A stretch of DNA of 64,000 nt, from NCBI GenBank assembly GCA_946965045.2, contig OX337231.1, forward strand, positions 1 to 64,000, in the 5' to 3' direction. Positions 1-14,653 of the stretch are shown piece by piece. This DNA comes from Epithemia pelagica. Lineage: Eukaryota > Protista > Bacillariophyta. Positions within the stretch are counted from its first letter, which is position 1, and every line of letters starts with the position of its first letter. The position numbers were made by a program, and so were the translations under genes. The notes under the pieces were generated by a model. The model was given only the letters and a program-made list of their open reading frames with translations. It ran no database searches and was not told the DNA's origin.

Positions 1-639
1 AAAATGAAAGAGGAGGCGTTTGGGTAGAAAAGTATCTCAGCAACGGTGCGTTACGAGTAATGTGAGATAGTTTACTGAAATGAATTGTGAGTAGTATCGA
101 GTTGCCCACAACAAACTCAAAACTTTTGATTGCGTTGGGCGGAGAAGCAATCATTTTCTTGACACGATTTTTGGTTATCCAAGTCTCCAAGATTTTTGAA
201 AAGACTGCCCATAGCAGGTTTCTGAACTTTGGTCTAGGCTGTTCACGGCGTGGGGCATTCATGATGCCAACCGAAACAAAGATGCAGTCAAGAAGCCAAA
301 AGTCTCATCAACCATGTTTCACCTGAATCTCTAGTTGGTATGTCAAGCAATTACAATGTCATTCCGTTTGGAATCAAACGTGAGCTTGTGGCTGTTGTCT
401 CGCGCTCCCCCTCTCTCACATGACAACCAGCAAGCGTTGTTTAGGTAGTCCATAATCAATCTGACTCTAGGAATAGACAGACGCCTCCGTCGTCCAAGAC
501 AAACCAACTCTTGCGTGCAATGCATACATATAATATGAAAGATCTATTGCGATGGATTAGTCGTGCTAGCTATTAGTCCCTCATAGCTGATACCAAAAGA
601 GAGATGAAGTCCGATGGCCAAAACAACTTTCAGTCTACT

Positions 640-3390
640 TTAGACCGTTGAGAGGATAGAATTGGTTTTGTTGGTGGCACCAAAAAATGGGTCAGTGGCA
701 AGTGCAACTACCGGTTCCAGGTCCTGTGGTGTTGGTGTTGGTAGCGAGTCTTGGCGCGTAACGGGTCGATTTGGAATCTGATCCTCGTCGTCGCCTTTGA
801 AGAGGTCCTTTACAAACTTGTCGAACACCAACAATTTCTTGTATTGCTGGTAATTCGTTGGAGGGAAGTTTGCCGCTGGTGTATCTTGGAGATACGATCT
901 CTTGATGCCCCATGTACCGATTGGGTTTCCGGTGGCATCGATTTCGTTGTTGTCACCAGCGATGGGTGTGCTCCGTAGTCGCGCAAATTCGCGAACTTTG
1001 GACACGAGGCTTGGTTGGTCCCCAAACGAAGTTCCCGAGGCGATTTGGGCTTTTACAAAAGCGCCATTCTGCGAAAAGTCGACAAAGTAGGGGGATGAAA
1101 TTCCGTTGGCATCCGGTTCGCATGCTTCGTGGGCCTCTCGACGCCAATCCCAAAACCGTTTGATCAAGTCATCTCCCAGGCCACCGACGGCCATACGTGG
1201 AGAGCCCCAGTCTTCAATGCGATTCGCCTGGCCTTGCATAACACAAGAGTCTTCCAGAGCAATGTGGTAGTTCCAGTTGTTGACCAAAAGAGTGAGGATG
1301 GGTCGGACGAGTGGTATCCCTGTGATTGTCGAAAGAATGGGTCCTCTTGGAAGATGCTGCCGAAGAAGCACCCGCGTTCGATGAGGCGCAACAGGAATAA
1401 TTTGAAACTCTTCTTCAAATCCACTGACCCCGCCGTGACGAACGATATTAGGAGGGTCAAAACGGATAAGCTTTTTTGGTCGTCCATCCTTTTCAATGGA
1501 TCCCAAATGTCCCATCCCACAGTCATCTGTGAAAGCCTTGAGCTTCAATTTTGGTAGATTTGAGTTCTTCATGCCAATACTCTCGATTGGCGGGATACTC
1601 CCGTCATGTAGAAAGAACAAGTGTGGAGAATCGAGATTGTTTTCGACAATGTACGAGTAGTCGACAGCGTAATCCAGGACGGTGTCAATCGTGACAGTCT
1701 CCATATCCCCTTTGCGGCGTGTTGGGAGCAAGGAAGGATCAGCTTCCAACACGTTGCCCCTCCAAACATAGACCAACCCATCGTGTTCCACAACAGCGCG
1801 ATTATTCCCACAGTTGGTTTTGGTCACTGACTTGAGAAAGTTGGAGCTGCCCGTCCTCGCCATGACATTCGCGTCTTCATCAACCGTGTTGAGCGTTGGA
1901 ATATTGACGCACTCTCCACCCTTTCCAAACCTCCACCCGTGGTAAAAGCAGACGAGTTCGCCATTTTCGACTTTTCCCATGGACAGAGGAACTGATCGAT
2001 GCGGACATACATCCGCCGTCGCAACAAGCTCGCCCGCCGAGTCGCGATAGATGACAATGGGCTCTCCCCATAGCCTTGTTCCAAATGGTTTGCCATCTGA
2101 TGTTTTCCGTCCCAGAACGGCATCCAGCGGTGTCTCGTAACCATCAATCTGCCAGGTGTAGGCGACAGCGTACCAGACCTTGTCAAAGCTCGGCTTCTTC
2201 AACAACACCTGGTTATTGCTCTGAGTCGGTGTGTACGACTTGACTAGGCCGTCGACGCGGCTGCTAATGTGCTGGGCAATCTTCCCTTGTTGAGAAACTT
2301 GATTCAGCTGGCCTTGGGCAGTCTTACTGGAACGGGACGCTGCTAGGCAAAAGTGAACGGCACCTCCCCATCGTGAACGGTGCTCCAAAAGATCCATGTT
2401 TGCCGTCTTGTCAAAGAAGATGGAAGCCTCGTTGGTGAATGGTACACTCACAAAGGGTTTGAGACTATCCGTCATGCAAACCATACACTCAGCACCATTG
2501 TTTCCTTCTGGGGAACAAAACTGGAAAATATCGGGCATCATGTTGCGAATAGCGTCCTCATTGACGTAAAATAGAACCGCTTCGGAAACAAACAAGGTGG
2601 GAACACCCACTTGGAGTCCTCCTTTCTCTCGTAGTGTGTCAATAATGCCTACCGGAGAGTCGCCGCCACAGTCATTCAAATCAAATGGGACAAGTTTGGG
2701 GCCTTTCCCTTCCAGATCCCAGGTAGGGTCATGCTCGTCTCGAAATTTCGCGTAGAGTTTCTCCTTGCCAGCGCAGACATCCGGCAGGTCCACTTCCATA
2801 AAGTTGATTTTGTCGTCGTGCGCGTGACGAAATCTCAAGGATCTCGTGTCGTATCCTGCACCGAACAAGACGATATTGCACTCGACGGCATTTCCAGACT
2901 CATTGGTACATGCTGGACTTGTTAAAAAGTGGTCGACTGCGTTGTCAATAAAGTCTGTTCGTGCTTGAATCCATTCGGTAAACTTGACAATGGGATCGAA
3001 CAAACGACTGCCACCCTCGGTGGTAACCAGACCGCGTGTGGTCGGTGGAAGAAACTTTTCTGCGACATCATCTTGGATCATGCCTCTCTGGTTCAGGAGA
3101 GCTCTCACCCAAAGAACTCGAAGGTTCTTGCTGGAATCGCTAATGGGATCTGGATCGAACGCATGAAGGAAACCAAACGCAGCACCAGTAAACGCATCGG
3201 AAAGAATTCCAAAAATATTTTGTGAATCGGCCTCGCTCGTCTGCCCGGGTGCTTGCTGCAGTCTACTAGAGCTCGAAGGCAGGCCCGTGGCGCTACGAGC
3301 CGCCAAGTGTAAAGGAGCCGTAAAAGCATGCGAGCTGACGGCAAAGAAAAGACCGAGACAAATCAGAACGGATCTGTTTTTAGGCGTCAT
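640..3390 (-). CDS. Plastid-targeted fusion protein: LCM-like SAM-dependent (carboxyl) methyltransferase plus Rieske [2Fe-2S]/mononuclear-iron oxygenase (CAO/PAO/TIC55 family)
   Basis: Long ORF with ATG at 3390 (MTPKNRSVLICLGLFFAVSSHA|FTAP, a signal peptide followed by the F of the diatom ASAFAP motif). LFGAGYDTRSLR, MEVDLP and FVSEAVLFY are LCM-type methyltransferase motifs. DVCPHRSVPLS...CFYHGWRF is the Rieske CxH..CxxH motif and ENNLDSPHLFFLH is the mononuclear Fe site. Confidence 0.85.
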   Translation of the reverse strand: MTPKNRSVLICLGLFFAVSSHAFTAPLHLAARSATGLPSSSSRLQQAPGQTSEADSQNIFGILSDAFTGAAFGFLHAFDPDPISDSSKNLRVLWVRALLNQRGMIQDDVAEKFLPPTTRGLVTTEGGSRLFDPIVKFTEWIQARTDFIDNAVDHFLTSPACTNESGNAVECNIVLFGAGYDTRSLRFRHAHDDKINFMEVDLPDVCAGKEKLYAKFRDEHDPTWDLEGKGPKLVPFDLNDCGGDSPVGIIDTLREKGGLQVGVPTLFVSEAVLFYVNEDAIRNMMPDIFQFCSPEGNNGAECMVCMTDSLKPFVSVPFTNEASIFFDKTANMDLLEHRSRWGGAVHFCLAASRSSKTAQGQLNQVSQQGKIAQHISSRVDGLVKSYTPTQSNNQVLLKKPSFDKVWYAVAYTWQIDGYETPLDAVLGRKTSDGKPFGTRLWGEPIVIYRDSAGELVATADVCPHRSVPLSMGKVENGELVCFYHGWRFGKGGECVNIPTLNTVDEDANVMARTGSSNFLKSVTKTNCGNNRAVVEHDGLVYVWRGNVLEADPSLLPTRRKGDMETVTIDTVLDYAVDYSYIVENNLDSPHLFFLHDGSIPPIESIGMKNSNLPKLKLKAFTDDCGMGHLGSIEKDGRPKKLIRFDPPNIVRHGGVSGFEEEFQIIPVAPHRTRVLLRQHLPRGPILSTITGIPLVRPILTLLVNNWNYHIALEDSCVMQGQANRIEDWGSPRMAVGGLGDDLIKRFWDWRREAHEACEPDANGISSPYFVDFSQNGAFVKAQIASGTSFGDQPSLVSKVREFARLRSTPIAGDNNEIDATGNPIGTWGIKRSYLQDTPAANFPPTNYQQYKKLLVFDKFVKDLFKGDDEDQIPNRPVTRQDSLPTPTPQDLEPVVALATDPFFGATNKTNSILSTV

Positions 3391-3818
3391 GGTCCCTCGT
3401 TTAGCTGTCTTGGTGTCGGCAATCGAAAAAAAGGTATCTTGGTGGTTGATGTTTTGATTGGGCACGGCGTGCCGTGAGCCGCGAGTGCCGATTCTCGAAA
3501 TCTTCTTGGATGCATGTTCAAGATGTCAAGAATTCGGGTTCGGTCCATCTGCTACAGATGGTATCTTGTAGTGTACTCCTAGGAGTACTTTTTTAAGGAG
3601 GGTCCCCCGGCGCGTAGGTCATGAATACGCGTGGAAGCTTTTGAGACACCCCGTCTCAAAAGCATTTATGATTTATGACTGCCATAGTATGGCATATTCC
3701 ACACAGTCTCCACGCAAAGGGCTTCCACGCGTTTTGCTCTGTTACAAACATATCCTCTCCGAGAGGATATGTCCTCTCGTGCTGCTATTTCTTGTCGACG
3801 TTATAAAGCGCCGGGACC

Positions 3819-4901
3819 ATGACAACGACTCTGCAAAAGCAAGCATGGCAGTCGGGCCTTGTCCTTGTAGATGACACAGTAGAATGGAATGAAAGAGACT
3901 GGCCTCCTCTCGAGGGAGGATGGCGTATGGGTCATGCTTCGGTCGTACTGAATCATACCGATAACAACCAGGAACAAACCGTCGTCGTGTTGGGCGGATA
4001 TCAAGCAGGCCAGGGCAGTGTCGATTCCATTCTTGTCTTGAACTTGGCAGAATCAAACAAGCAGTGGCGAGAAGGGCCACCCATGAACAAGAAACGTTGT
4101 GGGCATGCCGCTGTTGTGTGCAAAGGAGGTGTTTATGTTGTTGGAGGAGAATACAATAATAGCTATTCAAGTTTGAATTGCATCGAAAGAATTGATTACA
4201 ATGATTTGCTGCAACCAATTTTGACTTCAAGCAGCACACATGAGAGTCATTGGACAACATTGACATGTCGATTATCAACGGGCGGGTGTGGATGTTGTGC
4301 TATTGCGGTTCACAACCGTTACATCGTTGTAATGGGTGGCTACAACGATCGTTGTTCGTCCTCAGTCGATATTGTTGATACCAGGAATGAAACTGTCACT
4401 GCTGGACCATCCATGACTGTTCCTCGACAACTATGTGCCAGTGCGGCAATTGGTCACCGCATTTTTCTCGTTGGAGGCCAAAACGAGAGTGGCAATCTTG
4501 ACTCGGTGGAGTACATTGACTTTGCAATGATTTGTGATAATGAAAAGACAAGAAAGGAAACTGGCTCGACGTTCATTTCTTTCTCACCCACTTGGACCAC
4601 TCATTCGGAGTTGGGGCTTTCCAATGCAAGCAGCTTTTGTGCAATTGTCGCCGTGGGATCGTGTCTGGTTGTTGCCGGAGAAAAGCTTCAAACCCTCGAA
4701 GTCTTGGACACGCACCGCAACCGCGTTTGGAATCTGCCACCATTCGGACATGACCGCGATGGCAGCATTATGGTGACTGCTGCCAATCAAGTTGCCGTTA
4801 TAAGTGGCTTTGGCAATCCTTCCTGTGCAACATTAGGAATAATCGACAAGAATACATGGTGTTTTCGTCGACTCTGTGAGCAAGAGCCCAGCGGATGGTA
4901 G
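3819..4901 (+). CDS. Kelch-repeat beta-propeller protein
   Basis: Repeated kelch units: GHASVV..VVLGGY, GHAAVV..YVVGGE, IAVHNRYIVVMGGY, GPSMTVPR..IFLVGGQ. The start codon is uncertain. Confidence 0.8.
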   Translation: MTTTLQKQAWQSGLVLVDDTVEWNERDWPPLEGGWRMGHASVVLNHTDNNQEQTVVVLGGYQAGQGSVDSILVLNLAESNKQWREGPPMNKKRCGHAAVVCKGGVYVVGGEYNNSYSSLNCIERIDYNDLLQPILTSSSTHESHWTTLTCRLSTGGCGCCAIAVHNRYIVVMGGYNDRCSSSVDIVDTRNETVTAGPSMTVPRQLCASAAIGHRIFLVGGQNESGNLDSVEYIDFAMICDNEKTRKETGSTFISFSPTWTTHSELGLSNASSFCAIVAVGSCLVVAGEKLQTLEVLDTHRNRVWNLPPFGHDRDGSIMVTAANQVAVISGFGNPSCATLGIIDKNTWCFRRLCEQEPSGW

Positions 4902-7689: not shown

Positions 7690-10600
7690 CTAGACTTCTT
7701 CTGTGTCTTCCACATCTGAGTTGTTCTCTGAGTTGCTGTTGTCCTCGACAACATCTTCCATCTCGTCTGCATTATCATCGTCTCCTACTTCGTCTGCATC
7801 ATCTCCTACTTCGTCTGCGCGTTGTCTTATTTGTCGTCGTTGCATACGGAACTCAACAGCTGACCTTTTCCGACTATGACTTGGTTGCAGACCATGGTCC
7901 TCTCGTAGTTTGGCAACAGTCTCGTGGTTTTTTCGTACCGTGTAAGTGTACCTGGCTCCCTCTTCCGCAGCTACAAAGATTTCTTGGCCTTCACTGCAGT
8001 GAACGATCTCAAAGCATGTCATATTCTTGAATTGAGGTAGAGAATGGATCTTCCACCCTTCATCGGCTCGACTCTGACAACCTACAAGGTGTGCACAAAT
8101 CCCACACATGGCGCATCTTCCGACATTTTTGTAGATCCCAGCCATTTTCATTGTATCTTTTTTCCACCGATACTCCAAAAGACATACTGCACAGGCCACT
8201 TGTTTCTTGTCTTCGATTGCAACTGGATAATGACCATGTGCACAAGGAGCAGGACGTTCGGTGTTGGTTGTTCGGCGCGCCAATGGATCCACTTCTTGGG
8301 GGGTTCTATAACTACACATCATTTGGGCGACGATGGTGTAGAACCCGTGGCGAGAAAGCTTTCTCCGTCGTGACCTCAGCCGGTCACCAGCAGACAAATT
8401 CCATGCTATATAACTGTTCAATAGCATACAGTCGAGAATCGCCAAGCCTGCTTTTTTATACCATTTCTTGAAATGGGTGACGTTGGCAAACCCACCAAAC
8501 TGGAACCGCATTTGGTCGCCATTGTCTACTCCACCCATGTTATTTTGGTACCGGATCAAGGGTACGGGACAAGTAAGTTCACGTTTCTCACTTCCTACTT
8601 GACGTAGTACAGTGCCGCTTCCAGAGTCTTCAAACGAAGACACAAAGTTGACTGTTTTTGAATCCACCCATTGACCCAACACTAGACCGTTTACAGCATC
8701 GTGGTACAAAAGTACTGCACCCCGATTGTCAGATCCTTTCTTTAGATTCAACTTGTTCTTGTCCCAACCGACTCTGTTGGCACGGCATGTACCAGCGGAA
8801 AAGATTCTCAGTCGGTCACGGAGAATCACAGCAAGCTTCGGAGAACAGTACCGGTTATCCATCGAGATATGCCGATACCCGTCCGTCAGCTTATGCATCT
8901 CAAGCTGGTAGCATGCATTGACTACCGCTTTCATTGTAGTTGGGAGATTCAATGCTTGTTGGTGTATATAAGAATTAGTGGCGTTGGCCCCTTGATACAC
9001 GTCGAGGTGTAGGATTGCGTAGGTTGAAGAAGACGAGAGGATAAAGAAATCCACTCTGAACTTCTGTGGCTTGTCTTTGTTGTATTGTCGAACCGGACAA
9101 TACCGAGACCGACAACCAATCCCACCCTCATCAAATGCCAAGTCTTTCGGCACATAGAAGCTTCTTCGTGACGCAGCGTTCATTGATGTGATGAGCTTCC
9201 GTAGCTGGTGGCACTTGTCGCCACCACGTCTGCTAGACTCTTCCTCCAAATGGAAGGCGCCCCTTATTTGCCGAAATCTGGCCAGCTTCATGTATTGAGA
9301 AGCCCAACCAGTGCTGTTTTTTATTTCTACCAACGGATGGCCAGCACCAACATTGTACACCCGGTTTGACGTCTGAAAATGTGCGGCATACCCTCCTCCG
9401 TCGACGGGCCGCAGAGACATCATGAGAATTATTCCGAGGAACCTTGTCATTTCCTCTATTGTGACATTTTCCCATCGTTGGGAATGGTAGTATCCACGGC
9501 GTGATAAAAGATTTGGTTTTATCTTTTGGTCAAAATACATATTTGTGGCCGTTGCCATTCTCGCAATCGTTGAACTGGATAGACCACCCACAAACTGAAA
9601 ACATTCCCAAGGATTTGAAAAGTTATCAGAGACCCCAGGCCGAAGTCCATCAGGTCCTTTATAGAGGGACTGGTGGTTATCTTCTTTACCAATCCAATTG
9701 GATGGAAGAGTCGACATGGAAATCTCATGGTATGCAAAAGACAAGGCATCCATCAATTGGCGGATTGAAGTTTGATTGTTGGCACCTGACACATTCGCTC
9801 CTTCATTTCCTTCTTGTGCATCTTCTGCTTGTGCCTCATCGGTGTCAGATTGTGCAACTTCATCAAGTGGATTGTCAAATCTTGGTTGCTGTGTATCGGG
9901 TTCAAGATCCTCGTCACCATTGTCCTCATCAGAGTCGGAGGAATCAGATGACTCGGCCTGATTATGGCGACGGCTGCGGCGAGGAACATCGTTGTCGTCA
10001 TCAACAGGTTGAGCCGGTGCTGTAGTGCTACCACTGCCAAAAAGGCGGATTGGTCGAGAGTCGTCGTTGCGGGGAGTGTTGTCGTTGTTGGCCTCGGGTG
10101 GTACAGGGTCAGTTAGGTTTGAAATAGCTGGTGACGACTCTTCTCCAGTTGCAGTGGTGAGTGCTGCCCGTCGTCGTGCTCTCTCGATTGTATTAGGGAC
10201 GGACGTTGTTCTTTCGTTGGTACCTTGCTGGAGAGGCGATGTAGTTCTTGTTGCCCGTCTATCAGGCTCTACAGTAGTCGAGGGATTGTTCGTTGTCGTT
10301 CTTGTTTCTGCAAGAGGTTGTTGAGGTGCAGTGGCTGTCTGTGTCACTGTCGCTGGATGTGCGGTTGCGTTATTCCTCTGAGATTCATGTTTCCGTGCAA
10401 GTGTTGCTTCGTCGAAGTCCACAATAAATTGCTGGAACTTCTCCTTGATAAAAGGCGACGAAGTGAACTGGCGGCGCACCCATTGAGGATTTAGCGTGGT
10501 GAAATTACGCTGGTCCCATGAAACCACGTACACATAGCCATTTTTGGTTGTGGGACAAGCGATAATTTGCCCTTCGAGAACCAACGGAGTTCTCATGTCG

Positions 10601-10857
10601 CGAGAAGGGAACGACTGCTGAAACCTGTCGGTGTACGTTGGATCAAGCCAAAATGTATGCGGTGCGTACAGCTTTCGCTTTGCATATGAGAAACGGAGTC
10701 GTGGTGGTTGTCGTGAACGTTGGGTAGGGACTGGAGCAGGCACTGATGACACTTGGCTTGATTCGTTGTCTTGGGTTGATGAGTCAAGCAATGGTTGCGA
10801 ATAGGCGCTTGTGGACGTTTGCGTATCTTCAATGGAATCGGAGGTAGATGACGACAT
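7690..10857 (-). CDS. piggyBac-family (PGBD-like) DDD transposase with C-terminal Cys-rich domain
   Basis: LAFDEGGIG, VRQYNKDKPQKF, ISMDNRYCS and YQNNMGGVDNGDQ motifs; C-terminal CAVC..CAMCGICAH. Confidence 0.85.
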   Translation of the reverse strand: MSSSTSDSIEDTQTSTSAYSQPLLDSSTQDNESSQVSSVPAPVPTQRSRQPPRLRFSYAKRKLYAPHTFWLDPTYTDRFQQSFPSRDMRTPLVLEGQIIACPTTKNGYVYVVSWDQRNFTTLNPQWVRRQFTSSPFIKEKFQQFIVDFDEATLARKHESQRNNATAHPATVTQTATAPQQPLAETRTTTNNPSTTVEPDRRATRTTSPLQQGTNERTTSVPNTIERARRRAALTTATGEESSPAISNLTDPVPPEANNDNTPRNDDSRPIRLFGSGSTTAPAQPVDDDNDVPRRSRRHNQAESSDSSDSDEDNGDEDLEPDTQQPRFDNPLDEVAQSDTDEAQAEDAQEGNEGANVSGANNQTSIRQLMDALSFAYHEISMSTLPSNWIGKEDNHQSLYKGPDGLRPGVSDNFSNPWECFQFVGGLSSSTIARMATATNMYFDQKIKPNLLSRRGYYHSQRWENVTIEEMTRFLGIILMMSLRPVDGGGYAAHFQTSNRVYNVGAGHPLVEIKNSTGWASQYMKLARFRQIRGAFHLEEESSRRGGDKCHQLRKLITSMNAASRRSFYVPKDLAFDEGGIGCRSRYCPVRQYNKDKPQKFRVDFFILSSSSTYAILHLDVYQGANATNSYIHQQALNLPTTMKAVVNACYQLEMHKLTDGYRHISMDNRYCSPKLAVILRDRLRIFSAGTCRANRVGWDKNKLNLKKGSDNRGAVLLYHDAVNGLVLGQWVDSKTVNFVSSFEDSGSGTVLRQVGSEKRELTCPVPLIRYQNNMGGVDNGDQMRFQFGGFANVTHFKKWYKKAGLAILDCMLLNSYIAWNLSAGDRLRSRRRKLSRHGFYTIVAQMMCSYRTPQEVDPLARRTTNTERPAPCAHGHYPVAIEDKKQVACAVCLLEYRWKKDTMKMAGIYKNVGRCAMCGICAHLVGCQSRADEGWKIHSLPQFKNMTCFEIVHCSEGQEIFVAAEEGARYTYTVRKNHETVAKLREDHGLQPSHSRKRSAVEFRMQRRQIRQRADEVGDDADEVGDDDNADEMEDVVEDNSNSENNSDVEDTEEV

Positions 10858-12553
10858 GGCCTTTTGTATTTCAGTTCGTTGTAATGTTACGAAGCAGAAT
10901 GGAGAAGGTTGGCACTTGATTGTACTTCGGGAGAAAGAAATCAGCAATCAAACATGGACCTCTGGAGTCAGACAACAAAAATGAGGACAATCGTTGAACT
11001 TTCAAACGAGAGGATGAGAGCAATAACGAAGGAATCGGTGTACAATATCATATATCAAAATGTTCCAAATGGCAAAACCTACCAGAATAAAGGGTTCAAA
11101 ATGATATGACGTCAATAATGAGTATCATACAAAGAGAGGAAGATATGGGAGTAGTGTATTTACTACTCGACTTTATCGGAGTAGTGTATTTACTACTCGA
11201 TTACGAATGGCGTTCAAAGAACGCCGCTATCTCGCGTTGTGCGTACGCATTGTGCATATGCCCTCTCTTGTTTCGGTTAAAAAGGGTTGCGGCCGCGGAA
11301 GTTGCAAGTTGCAAGACAATCAACGAGAGCACAAAGCATAAACCAAAGATGGAGGACTCGTTGTTTTCCCTCTTCATTGTTGACTGTCATGGTGAATCAT
11401 GTTGTTGTTCATGGCCAATGTAGATGTAGGTTGTAGGTTGAAGTCCAATCGTCCTATTGTATTCCCTGTCCGATTTCCGATTGATTGTCTGATAATCGAA
11501 CACATCAATAGTTTGAATGATGCATTTGTTTGATTGTTGCATTCCTTCCAATCCGTGATCCTCGAATCATCTTGCTGTGCATGGTTCTTGTCCCATTGTA
11601 GGAAGTAGGGTACACAACAATGGAAAAAGAGATGGTAAGCGATCGTCACAAATCAATACGTGCCATTGCCATGTTTTCGACAAGAGAGATACTGTTGGCA
11701 GCAGACGTTAATTTATTTATGCCGACGGTTATATTGTTAGAATTCTCACCGTCTATGGTGGTTAGATTCTACATCTCATCGATTCCCCATGTCACATAGC
11801 CTCGTGCTATCGTATCATGCCATCTAGCTTCGAGCTATGTTCCCTAGCTTCGCGCTATATCGACCTATATTTCTTCGCAAATCATGAAAAGTGAGAATAG
11901 ATTGACGAACTCACTCTCAAGACTAAACTGGGTCGTGCGGTATTACAACGGACATAAATTTGGCCGTTGCTCGGACATTATACTAACGCCCTAAGCGTAC
12001 GCGCCCGAAATCATCGAGCGCGCCCAAGCGACATCCGAGCGCTGTCGGCATCTATCCGACCCAACGGTCTAAGTATCCCAAGCACGACACACGATCACGC
12101 GAGACCATATTTCCATTCCCACAATCTCCAAATTGTCAACAAGCTGCGCGCCATGAAAACAACTATGCCAACCCAAAGCAAGAGCTGTTGACCCTGTATA
12201 TGTTATCCGTCCACATATACATGTCATATACATCACATGAATCGACTCCAACTATTCCAAACCTGTTGCCGCCAAGAATCTATGACACATGACCCTTGGC
12301 AGGACCGAACATTTCACGTAGACCTATCGTAGTAATCAACACACAATCTAACAATATCACCATTTATCACATCATCTTTTGTGTCCCGACTATCCTTCTG
12401 ATAGACTTCGACTTGCTTGCTTCTTTGACCCTGAGAAGCTTGTATCGGTTGGTGACCTACCTGATTGTCTGCTCTACCGAGCATCAATGTCCCTACGATT
12501 CAGAAAGAATTGTAACAGATTAACAGTCTCAAAGCTTATTTCCTTGTGGTTTC

Positions 12554-12923
12554 ATGGATACTAACGAGCTTATCACTCCTGTACGACAGATCTATCGAGC
12601 CAAACTGCATCCAGGGCAGCCCGATACCCTGGTGCAGCAGGAACTGGTGCCGACGCCGAAGGCAGCCAACACATCGGTCAACATCTCCGTCGACAGTTCC
12701 AACAGCAACCCATTCGAGACTCCAACCCAGCCTCACACTCCGATCCCTGCGCCGTTGCTTCGGCCCCCGAGTCCGCCTCGTCGGCTCGTCCCTTCTCGAT
12801 CCCGTCGTACCACCCGGTTGATTGCTGATCATATCAAGTACTTCCGTCAACCAACTTGTTCGACCTTCGATCCCGAGATCATCCGTGGGGAGACCCAGAT
12901 CGAACACCAGTTCCAATCGGTGA
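12554..12923 (+). pseudogene. Pro-rich ORF of unknown origin, cut at 12924 by the first element junction
   Basis: The ORF runs directly into the CCCTAAGG junction. No recognisable domain. Confidence 0.3.
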
Positions 12924-12967
12924 CCCTAAGGAGAAAGTGCCTGTCCGTAGGCCTACGTAGACTCTAG

Positions 12968-13110
12968 CGTCCCACTGCAGAACAGCCCCCATCCCACTTG
13001 TCCCACTGCAGAACCGCCCTCTGTCCCACTGCAGAAGTGCCCTGTCCCACTGCAGAACAGCCTGCTGTCCCACTGCAGAACAGCCCACTAGAACAGCCCT
13101 ATTCTAGTCA
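12968..13110 (+). repeat. Imperfect tandem repeats with core TCCCACTGCAGAA (alpha terminus)
   Basis: About six copies of the core at roughly 21-26 bp spacing. The reverse complement occurs at about 35045-35175 and 39250-39300. Confidence 0.85.
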
Positions 13111-13327
13111 TACCTATGCCCATGCTTATTAGTTAGTCTTAGCTCGACTAGTATCATTTCCCGTCACTACAAGTGCGACTGGGTCAGATTTTTGTGTGAA
13201 ATGACCCTTCTTTGGGCCTAATATTTTTTTGTGAGACGTGATTAGATTTTTTGTGAGATGACTCTTCTATGGGCCTTTTGATGATGGTCTTTAACCCGAC
13301 ACATTGTAACTACTAACTTAATACTAT

Positions 13328-14653
13328 TTACTTGAATGCTTTCTTTGCATATGGATTCCTTGGTAGAGCTGGTCGTGCCACAGACGGTCTGGCTGCTGTG
13401 GTTGCATGAGGTGTCTGCGTCACTGTCATGCCCATCCGTTGTTCAACACTCTGACACAGAAAAGCATGAAACGAATGGCTGTCGCATGTTACTTCGGACA
13501 TGAAATCAGTCATTGCTCTGGATTGTCCATTGGTCTTCCTTGACTCATATACATCGATCATCAGCCGCTTCAATCTTCGTTGTAAAGGACATGCACTGGG
13601 ATGGTGTTGCTTGTAGCCGCGCCTGCTGAACACATCAAAGCAGTAAAAGCAGGCCTTGTTGCTCAAGACTGTTCGGAAATTGACTTGGCACTGTCCTCTC
13701 TGGTGACCTGACTGACCACAGTGGAAGCATGCTCCATAGGGCAGACAGCTTTCACCATTGCATCCTGCCTCCTTGCACACAATGCATTCTCTTGTAAGCC
13801 TTGCCAGATAGGATTCAGCCTTTTCCGCATCAATGTCTTCATTCCTGACCCTCTCCCTGACTCTGGAGTGTCCACTTTGACTTGATTGTTCAACACACCA
13901 ATCACACACACCACAGCAATCCACCTCCAATCCGAATCGTCTTGACAGACCTTGTACTCGGCATGTTCTTTCGGCCAGCCACTTTGCTATTGAACTTGAG
14001 CCAAACACCGACTCAAGGTGAGCTCTTGATTCAGATCCAGTCAGTAATCCTTTGTCTTCAAGTAGCCTCAATGTCTGGTCTTCTTGGAGATCCCTTGCCG
14101 TGTGTCCTGTGCTGTACAACAATGTGACACTCCCATCAGGCTTTCTCTGACTTGGCCGTAGGCGTCCCACAGCTTGGACGATGTTCATTAGACTGTATAT
14201 CATGCCGCATACAATCACATGTCGACAATTGTGATTCTCATTACCACATAGTGCACATGTTGTTGAGACCAAGATTCGGATGTCCCCAGATCTCCACTGC
14301 TGGGCAACTGCTTCTTGTCTACTTGAAGGCTCATCCGATGACAGAGCTTCAACAGAAAGGTTGGTTGATTGCTTGAGGCACTGTGCAATGTCGGTACACT
14401 GCTGTTTAGTCGCCACAATCACATGTACACAGGTTGATGACTCTTTGGTTACTTTGCCTTTGGTGCAGATCACTGTGTCATGGACTAGTTGTGATGATTG
14501 GACTGTCTCAATTCGGAAACCCTTAGGGAAGATTCCCAATAGAGTTCTCCCCGTAATCAATCGATCGAGACGAAGGCCCAAGTATTCATAAAGACTCTCT
14601 ACCAGAGGCCCGGGAAGAGTTCCAGAGAGTGTGGTGAGGGGCACCCCAAATTG
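13328..14653 (-). pseudogene. 3' fragment of subfamily C YR-RecQ gene (helicase motifs III-VI, Zn domains)
   Basis: Nearly identical to the C-terminal half of ORF 31959-34814. The N-terminal residues of the listed ORF (to 14728) come from the adjacent beta terminus. Confidence 0.85.

Follow-up and report, generated by a model that had tools for sequence, protein, structure and literature searches.

A candidate plastid-targeted methyltransferase–Rieske oxygenase fusion in the diatom Epithemia pelagica, with chlorophyll c3 synthesis as a possible role

Gene structure at the locus

The stretch of DNA analysed here (the window) comprises positions 1 to 64,000 of contig OX337231.1 of the diatom Epithemia pelagica, and near its beginning it carries a gene that joins an LCM-type methyltransferase and a Rieske oxygenase in one predicted polypeptide. 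The protein is very probably an active, plastid-targeted bifunctional methyltransferase/Rieske monooxygenase that belongs to a lineage-restricted algal family, as judged from its sequence and those of its relatives. The evidence is best explained by a nuclear, intron-free gene whose product is a soluble, plastid-imported bifunctional tailoring enzyme. The open reading frame (ORF) as listed runs over 640..3465 on the minus strand and encodes 941 residues from a GTG, with no stop codon inside. The GTG is an artefact of the bacterial start rule, and the internal ATG at 3390 yields a protein of 916 residues with the N-terminus MTPKNRSVLICLGLFFAVSSHAFTAP. The sequence-only reading that preceded this work had placed one uninterrupted reading frame at 640–3390, which holds, and had given no strand; the gene lies on the minus strand.

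The alignment to transcript-derived orthologues is unbroken over query residues ~52–867, so that no intron is needed. A second assembly of the same species (locus L007; ENA ERZ21939226, ctg1321l) contains a copy that is 97.7% identical, whose protein (P0246) was called at 967 residues from an upstream in-frame ATG. In the window, the stretch matching that upstream start region is free of ATG codons, a point in favour of 3390 as the start. The sequence is present in four DNA runs of a single study, with no RNA runs among them. Several homologues are transcriptome-derived, indicating that the fusion is a single mRNA in the relatives, and a single transcript is expected in E. pelagica by inference from them.

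Two predicted active sites in one polypeptide

The N-terminal half matches the Pfam family LCM (PF04072) over residues 92–285, with an E-value of 1e-15 and 58.6 bits against a cut-off of 22.3. A profile search of the PDB returned LCMT1 (3iei, 2e-12) together with Rv0731c and ML2640. The AlphaFold2 model of the domain had a predicted local distance difference test score (pLDDT) of 88, and its best Foldseek matches were LCMT1, ML2640c, PPM1, TYW4 and Rv0731c; the entries 3o7w, 3iei, 2uyq, 1rjd and 2zwa were found at a probability of 1.00, with TM-scores of only 0.45–0.57. The score above the Pfam cut-off, the intact S-adenosylmethionine (SAM) motif and the LCMT1/PPM1-like modelled fold uphold the LCM-type methyltransferase domain proposed earlier. 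The TIGR00027 methyltransferase subfamily of NCBIfam scored 52.3 bits, under its cut-off of 93.55. A fold search of the ESM Atlas brought up nothing beyond generic bacterial LCM clusters and animal TYW4, and a feature search of the same atlas gave no usable match. Characterised LCM-family enzymes (LCMT1/PPM1, TYW4 and TcmP) methylate carboxyl groups.

The C-terminal half contains a Rieske domain (PF00355) at residues 431–503, with an E-value of 1e-21 and 77 bits against a cut-off of 20.3, in which C462, H464, C481 and H484 fit the ligand pattern CxH-x(15-17)-CxxH. Pfam matched the start of VanA_C weakly, at residues 576–600. The profile search of the PDB placed PDO (7fhr), SxtT (6wn3) and DdmC (3gb4) at the top, all at about 1e-26. 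The oxygenase half was modelled moderately (pLDDT 63), and Foldseek aligned this model over the whole fold (310–400 columns) with DdmC, SxtT, GxtA, NdmA, phthalate dioxygenase and KshA; the E-values for DdmC, SxtT and GxtA were 1e-13 to 1e-15, with a best value of 2.5e-15. The four ligands, the 2-His-1-carboxylate site with its bridging acidic residue and the whole-fold match bear out the complete Rieske plus mononuclear-iron oxygenase of the sequence-only reading. The sequence points to a His/His/Asp iron site and to the homotrimeric (alpha3) type of Rieske monooxygenase. SdmA, a 4-beta-methylsterol monooxygenase and the best NCBIfam match, was not accepted as a function, since it scored 67 bits where the cut-off is 600 and matched the Rieske end only.

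Plastid presequence

The N-terminus is a hydrophobic signal peptide, and behind it stands an Ala-Phe junction of the ASAFAP type known from diatoms (...AVSSHA|FTAP at residues 17–26). Plastid targeting was judged by heuristic inspection of the sequence, not by a dedicated predictor, and on that footing the proposed bipartite plastid signal, with Phe at +1, was found. The A/S-F junction is kept in homologues from diatoms, bolidophytes, pelagophytes, a dictyochophyte and Phaeocystis (NAFTAP, NAFVAP, SAFAPP, GAFAPL and similar). All groups of the family show a signal peptide whose cleavage site is followed by an aromatic residue, so that the plastid location is probably ancestral. The coordinates of these features and of the domains are collected in Table 1.

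Table 1. Features of the fusion gene and its predicted protein, with positions in the window.
Feature	Residues	Positions	Strand	Basis
Complete coding sequence, intron-free	916 plus stop (stop codon 640-642)	640..3390	minus	ORF list and continuous alignment with transcript-derived orthologues
Signal peptide, ending SSHA|FTAP, Phe at +1	1-22	3325..3390	minus	Hydropathy maximum at residues 7-25 and conserved A/S-F junction
Ser/Pro-rich transit-peptide-like stretch, poorly conserved	23-55	3226..3324	minus	Column identity 0.16-0.20, against >0.5 from residue 61 on
LCM-type SAM-dependent methyltransferase domain	~58-355 (Pfam core 92-285)	2326..3219	minus	Pfam PF04072, PDB profile search, AlphaFold2, Foldseek
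SAM-binding motif GAGYDTR	177-183	2842..2862	minus	G177, G179, D181, T182 and R183 invariant in 54/54 fused homologues
Inter-domain linker, low conservation	356-400	2191..2325	minus	Column identity 0.28; no Pfam match for residues 290-435
Rieske [2Fe-2S] domain; ligands C462, H464, C481, H484 (1939-2007)	431-503	1882..2100	minus	Pfam PF00355
Mononuclear non-haem iron catalytic domain	~540-750	1141..1773	minus	Invariant motif, PDB profile search, Foldseek
Iron motif E583-x3-D587-x2-H590-x4-H595	583-595	1606-1644	minus	Invariant in all fused clades
D714, probable third iron ligand	714	1249-1251	minus	Aligned with conserved Asp of outgroups; role from alignment alone
C-terminal extension, mostly variable	751-916	643..1140	minus	No Pfam match, no transmembrane-like segment
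Conserved motif GTWGIKRSYLQDTPAANFPPTN	825-846	853-918	minus	G828, P838, P844 and N846 invariant in alignment A2

A family of fused proteins

A search with the whole protein returned 102 homologues, more than 80 of which carry both Pfam domains in one chain. Full-length members derived from transcriptomes include those of Corethron hystrix (P0019, 853 residues), Ditylum brightwellii (A0A7S1Z823, 839 residues), Florenciella parvula (P0253, 893 residues), Thalassiothrix antarctica (P0476, 946 residues), Proboscia alata (P0518, 949 residues) and Phaeocystis (A0A7S0HD33, 831 residues). Many other homologues lie on contigs of ~3 kb that are probably of metatranscriptomic origin, and the shorter Rieske-only and LCM-only matches at 60–75% identity are mostly one gene split by the gene caller, as at locus L003. 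Diatoms, bolidophytes, pelagophytes, one dictyochophyte and haptophytes are the sole sources of named members. None of the named matches, which stem from a word-indexed search and not from genome searches, belongs to Phaeodactylum, Thalassiosira pseudonana or any Chrysista alga. Our literature search found no description of this LCM–Rieske fusion.

Conservation was assessed in an alignment of 54 fused proteins with 37–69% identity to the window protein. The SAM motif, the acidic residues E199/D201 and E270 downstream of it and the four residues of the iron motif are invariant in all 54, and the Rieske ligands are invariant in all 40 fused proteins of clades A, A2, B and D. Invariance of both active sites at such overall identity indicates purifying selection on both. 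The fusion, which places the two domains in one polypeptide in diatoms, bolidophytes, pelagophytes and a dictyochophyte, is both real and old. It is conceivable that one half alone is catalytic, with LCM serving as a SAM-sensing or scaffold module, or that the fusion is decaying and has no joint function. The deletion of the Rieske module in haptophyte clade C, which indicates that modules can be lost, agrees with such a view. However, the SAM, acidic, Rieske and iron residues are all kept across those 40 fused proteins at 37–69% identity, and clade C still keeps the LCM and iron-site residues, so that we regard an idle half as very improbable.

Trees were built on the Rieske and catalytic part with FastTree (143 rows) and with IQ-TREE under a mixture model (59 rows), with bacterial-type proteins that match both VanA_C and PaO as outgroups. 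Both trees recovered one well-separated, long-branched family. Clade A (support 100) unites the window gene with Ditylum, Corethron, Thalassiothrix, Pseudo-nitzschia, Proboscia and the bolidophytes Triparma and Bolidomonas, where Pseudo-nitzschia is placed through a cluster containing a JGI Psemu1 model; marine samples contribute about 43 distinct clusters to clade A. The pelagophyte clade A2 (Aureococcus and Chrysophaeum) is sister to clade A in FastTree (support 83), a relationship not recovered by IQ-TREE. Diatoms have a second clade, B (Thalassiosira exigua and Thalassiosira sp. AJA248-18), and clade D contains Florenciella. Several paralogue clades thus make up the family: diatoms have A and B, pelagophytes have several, and haptophytes have C along with standalone forms. 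Bacterial and archaeal LCM relatives share at most 33% identity, and Rieske ORFs lie nearby at only 1 of the 80 loci scanned. The fusion appears to have arisen in algae, and the substrate is not hinted at by bacterial operons.

Relationship to the chlorophyllide oxygenase family

The sequence-only reading had assigned the oxygenase half to the same Rieske family as CAO. This stands at the superfamily level only, and by score the protein does not belong to the CAO/PAO/TIC55 (PaO) family, as residues 400–916 gave no match to PaO (PF08417) at E-values up to 1. A C-terminal membrane anchor was not found either; outside the signal peptide, no hydrophobic 19-residue window exceeds 1.81, and the one at residue 685 falls within the catalytic core. 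These two results bear on the alternative of PAO/TIC55-like chlorophyll breakdown, in which a chlorophyll catabolite would be opened or hydroxylated by the Rieske half and altered at a carboxyl group by the methyltransferase. Plastid targeting fits this role, the nearest relatives outside the family are Rieske proteins that score for PaO and VanA_C, and a clade-B homologue has a faint PaO match (E-value 0.16). Against it stand the missing PaO match and membrane anchor of the window protein, and the universality of the process despite the lack of a named homologue in Phaeodactylum or T. pseudonana. Known catabolism, moreover, strips a methyl ester (MES16/pheophorbidase) and does not add one. 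We consider a role in breakdown improbable.

Rearranged modules in haptophytes

In Prymnesium, the two halves are found on separate genes, a standalone Rieske–catalytic protein (P0114) and a standalone LCM protein (P0375), and the Chrysochromulina protein P0378 is likewise a standalone LCM protein. That the halves are separate in Prymnesium and fused elsewhere argues for a functional link between them. Proteins of clade C (P0421, P0287, P0078, P0095 and P0084, one of them labelled Phaeocystis) have the whole Rieske cluster region deleted, but their LCM motifs and their His/His/Asp iron site are preserved. Standalone relatives of 400–500 residues (P0124, P0127, P0128, P0132, P0137, P0150 and P0114) have perfect Rieske ligands and have lost iron-site residues. 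These complementary losses suggest a mixed trimer in which one subunit would pass electrons to the other.

One clade-C gene lies on contigs very rich in guanine and cytosine (70–72%; L003–L006), and these contigs recur in Tara Oceans metagenomes. At L003, gene calling yields two ORFs in place of one, for the LCM part and for the catalytic part, which share 55 nt in different frames; the frame change could be a short intron or a frameshift.

Genomic surroundings

A Kelch-repeat gene of 360 residues (3819-4901, plus strand; Kelch_1, E-value 1e-25) stands head-to-head with the fusion gene at a distance of 428 bp. LCM and Kelch are the domain pair of TYW4. The Kelch gene is also adjacent in the other assembly of the same species (L007) and is not found at the locus of the closest relative (L001), and the adjacency is probably a coincidence. 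That closest genomic orthologue (P0002, 69% identity) lies on a 2.7-Mb ENA contig, where retrotransposon-type ORFs (Pol_BBD, SH3_retrovirus and RVT_2) occupy both flanks (1-4400 and 9200-14532). The gene neighbourhoods gave no functional hint, be it the Kelch gene in the window, the retrotransposon ORFs at L001 or the unrelated neighbours of the Prymnesium Rieske gene.

Species distribution and chlorophyll c3

Chlorophyll c3 is chlorophyll c2 with a 7-methoxycarbonyl group (PMC4584358; PMC13297055), and its molecular mass is 653, against 609 for c2 (PMC4584358). The sequence-only reading had proposed the fusion as a candidate c3 synthase, and the presence of the family should then track the pigment. 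At class level it broadly does, as all groups with named members include known c3 producers. A taxonomic compendium gives chlorophylls c1–3 among the pigments of Bolidophyceae, and c1 and c2 alone for the Chrysista classes (PMC6492006). Thalassionema nitzschioides and Rhizosolenia setigera have been cited as c3 diatoms (PMC2639444). Two of the five labelled clade-A diatom genera, Thalassiothrix (Thalassionemataceae) and Proboscia (Rhizosoleniaceae), belong to the same families as these two species. Pseudo-nitzschia includes c3 species, and Phaeodactylum, which makes c2, and T. pseudonana are without c3. The match between gene and pigment thus holds for classes, for Thalassiothrix, Proboscia and the bolidophytes and for Phaeocystis, and it fails for Ditylum brightwellii.

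Ditylum brightwellii leads the points that weigh against a c3 synthase. This species provides the closest named orthologue (68% identity) with all catalytic residues intact, and high-performance liquid chromatography detected in it chlorophyll a, chlorophylls c1+2 and carotenoids, c3 being 'only present in P. globosa' (PMC2639444). Because some c1+c2 diatoms reportedly contain traces of c3 (PMC4584358), the objection is serious but not fatal. Among diatoms, c3 replaced c1 in ~12% of 51 species (PMC4584358), and the ~43 clade-A clusters from marine samples seem wider than that distribution. The second diatom clade, B, occurs in Thalassiosira species. Thalassiosira is generally of the c1+c2 type, as is Pseudo-nitzschia multiseries, which carries a clade-A gene. 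The major c3 producer Emiliania huxleyi does not appear among the named matches of the word-indexed search. The phylogenetic profile consists of about 15 named species, most matches having no taxon label. The multiplicity of paralogue clades is suggestive of several substrates, and the lack of a PaO match described above adds to these points.

Proposed function

Rieske monooxygenases of the CAO type oxidise a ring methyl group, and to our knowledge hardly any known plastid metabolites of these algae other than chlorophylls are methyl esters. The two domains suggest a mechanism in which plastid ferredoxin would reduce the Rieske cluster, the cluster would hand electrons to the iron site of the neighbouring subunit, and the iron site would oxidise a substrate methyl group stepwise from CH3 through CH2OH and CHO to COOH. 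The fused methyltransferase would then convert the new carboxyl group to a methyl ester with SAM. The substrate may be the C7 methyl group of chlorophyll c2 (or of divinyl-protochlorophyllide) and the product the 7-methoxycarbonyl group of chlorophyll c3, an assignment that we offer tentatively. It draws on the domain architecture, plastid targeting, the proposed chemistry and the class-level distribution, and it is burdened by Ditylum, by clade B in Thalassiosira and by the absent PaO match.

The same bifunctional mechanism could serve another plastid small molecule, for example a different tetrapyrrole intermediate, an acid derived from a prenyl lipid or carotenoid, an osmolyte or an acid with a signalling role, and the association with c3 lineages would then reflect shared plastid ancestry. 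The intact orthologue of c3-free Ditylum, the at least five paralogue clades including the one in Thalassiosira, and the breadth of the marine clade-A clusters all favour such a substrate, as do the best PDB relatives, which use small aromatic acids, alkaloids and steroids and not tetrapyrroles. On the other side, we know of no other plastid metabolite in these algae with the signature of a methyl group oxidised to a methyl ester, and no concrete candidate emerged from the gene neighbours or from the bacterial pairing at 1 of 80 LCM loci. A housekeeping role is argued against by the lack of named matches in the model diatoms. The c3 synthase is the best concrete hypothesis, held with reserve, and another plastid substrate is equally likely.

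Three further roles were rejected. An alternative pair of Mg-protoporphyrin methyl ester and cyclase would have to be universal, yet no named match came from model diatoms. The synthesis of 19'-acyloxyfucoxanthin needs an acyltransferase, and diatoms are without that pigment. Methylation with oxidative decarboxylation in the dimethylsulfoniopropionate pathway finds no support here.

No published enzyme for chlorophyll c3 was found in our literature search, and a review on chlorophyll biosynthesis from June 2026 covers c1/c2 synthesis only and does not describe a c3 enzyme (PMC13297055). A more elaborate proposal, to which we give somewhat less credence than to the substrate assignment itself, is that the whole family acts as c3 synthase, performing three oxidations of the C7 methyl group of c2 and then the esterification in one polypeptide, and that haptophytes have split this enzyme into a Rieske-less methyltransferase–oxygenase subunit and a separate Rieske-donor subunit that would form a mixed trimer. 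Haptophytes, pelagophytes and some diatoms use chlorophyll c3 as a major light-harvesting pigment, and oceanographers use it as a standard chemotaxonomic marker. With one gene plausibly covering both steps, the c3 idea becomes directly testable. Whatever the substrate, this is a conserved, lineage-restricted plastid family with an architecture that we did not find described and with modules unusually reshuffled in haptophytes.

Comparison with known enzymes

The architecture appears to be a new combination of known kinds of enzyme, and no bacterial precedent for the pairing was found beyond the single locus among the 80 scanned. On the methyltransferase side, LCMT1/PPM1, TYW4, ML2640/Rv0731c and TIGR00027 share the fold and the GxGxDTR SAM motif with the window protein. 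Identity in structural alignments is 12–18%, and the window domain differs in being plastid-targeted, as predicted, and fused to an oxygenase.

On the oxygenase side, the best matches in sequence and fold are DdmC, SxtT/GxtA, phthalate dioxygenase, NdmA and KshA (E-values of 5e-17 for a single sequence, ~1e-26 for profiles and 2.5e-15 in Foldseek). The DdmC-type homotrimeric monooxygenases have in common with the window protein a Rieske domain and an SRPBCC-type catalytic domain, with no beta subunit needed. They share 17–20% identity over the fold, but they are bacterial and unfused, act on small aromatics, alkaloids or steroids, and are without the GTWGIK...FPPxN extension.

The only chlorophyll c-specific enzyme described is CHLC, a 2-oxoglutarate/Fe(II) dioxygenase (PMC13297055). 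It is also an oxygen-dependent tailoring enzyme that acts on protochlorophyllide-type pigments in the same algae. CHLC differs in having an unrelated fold and cofactor, in acting on the C17 propionate instead of C7, and in yielding c1/c2 instead of c3.

The closest parallel in chemistry is found in CAO and in PAO/TIC55/PTC52 (LLS1-like), which, like the window protein, are plastid-located and presumably ferredoxin-dependent and carry the CxH...CxxH and E-x3-D-x2-H-x4-H motifs. The chemistry proposed here is that of CAO, which oxidises the C7 methyl group of chlorophyll(ide) step by step. In contrast to these enzymes, the window protein has neither a match to PF08417 nor C-terminal membrane helices. 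It alone possesses an N-terminal methyltransferase, and its proposed reaction would need a third oxidation, to the carboxyl group.

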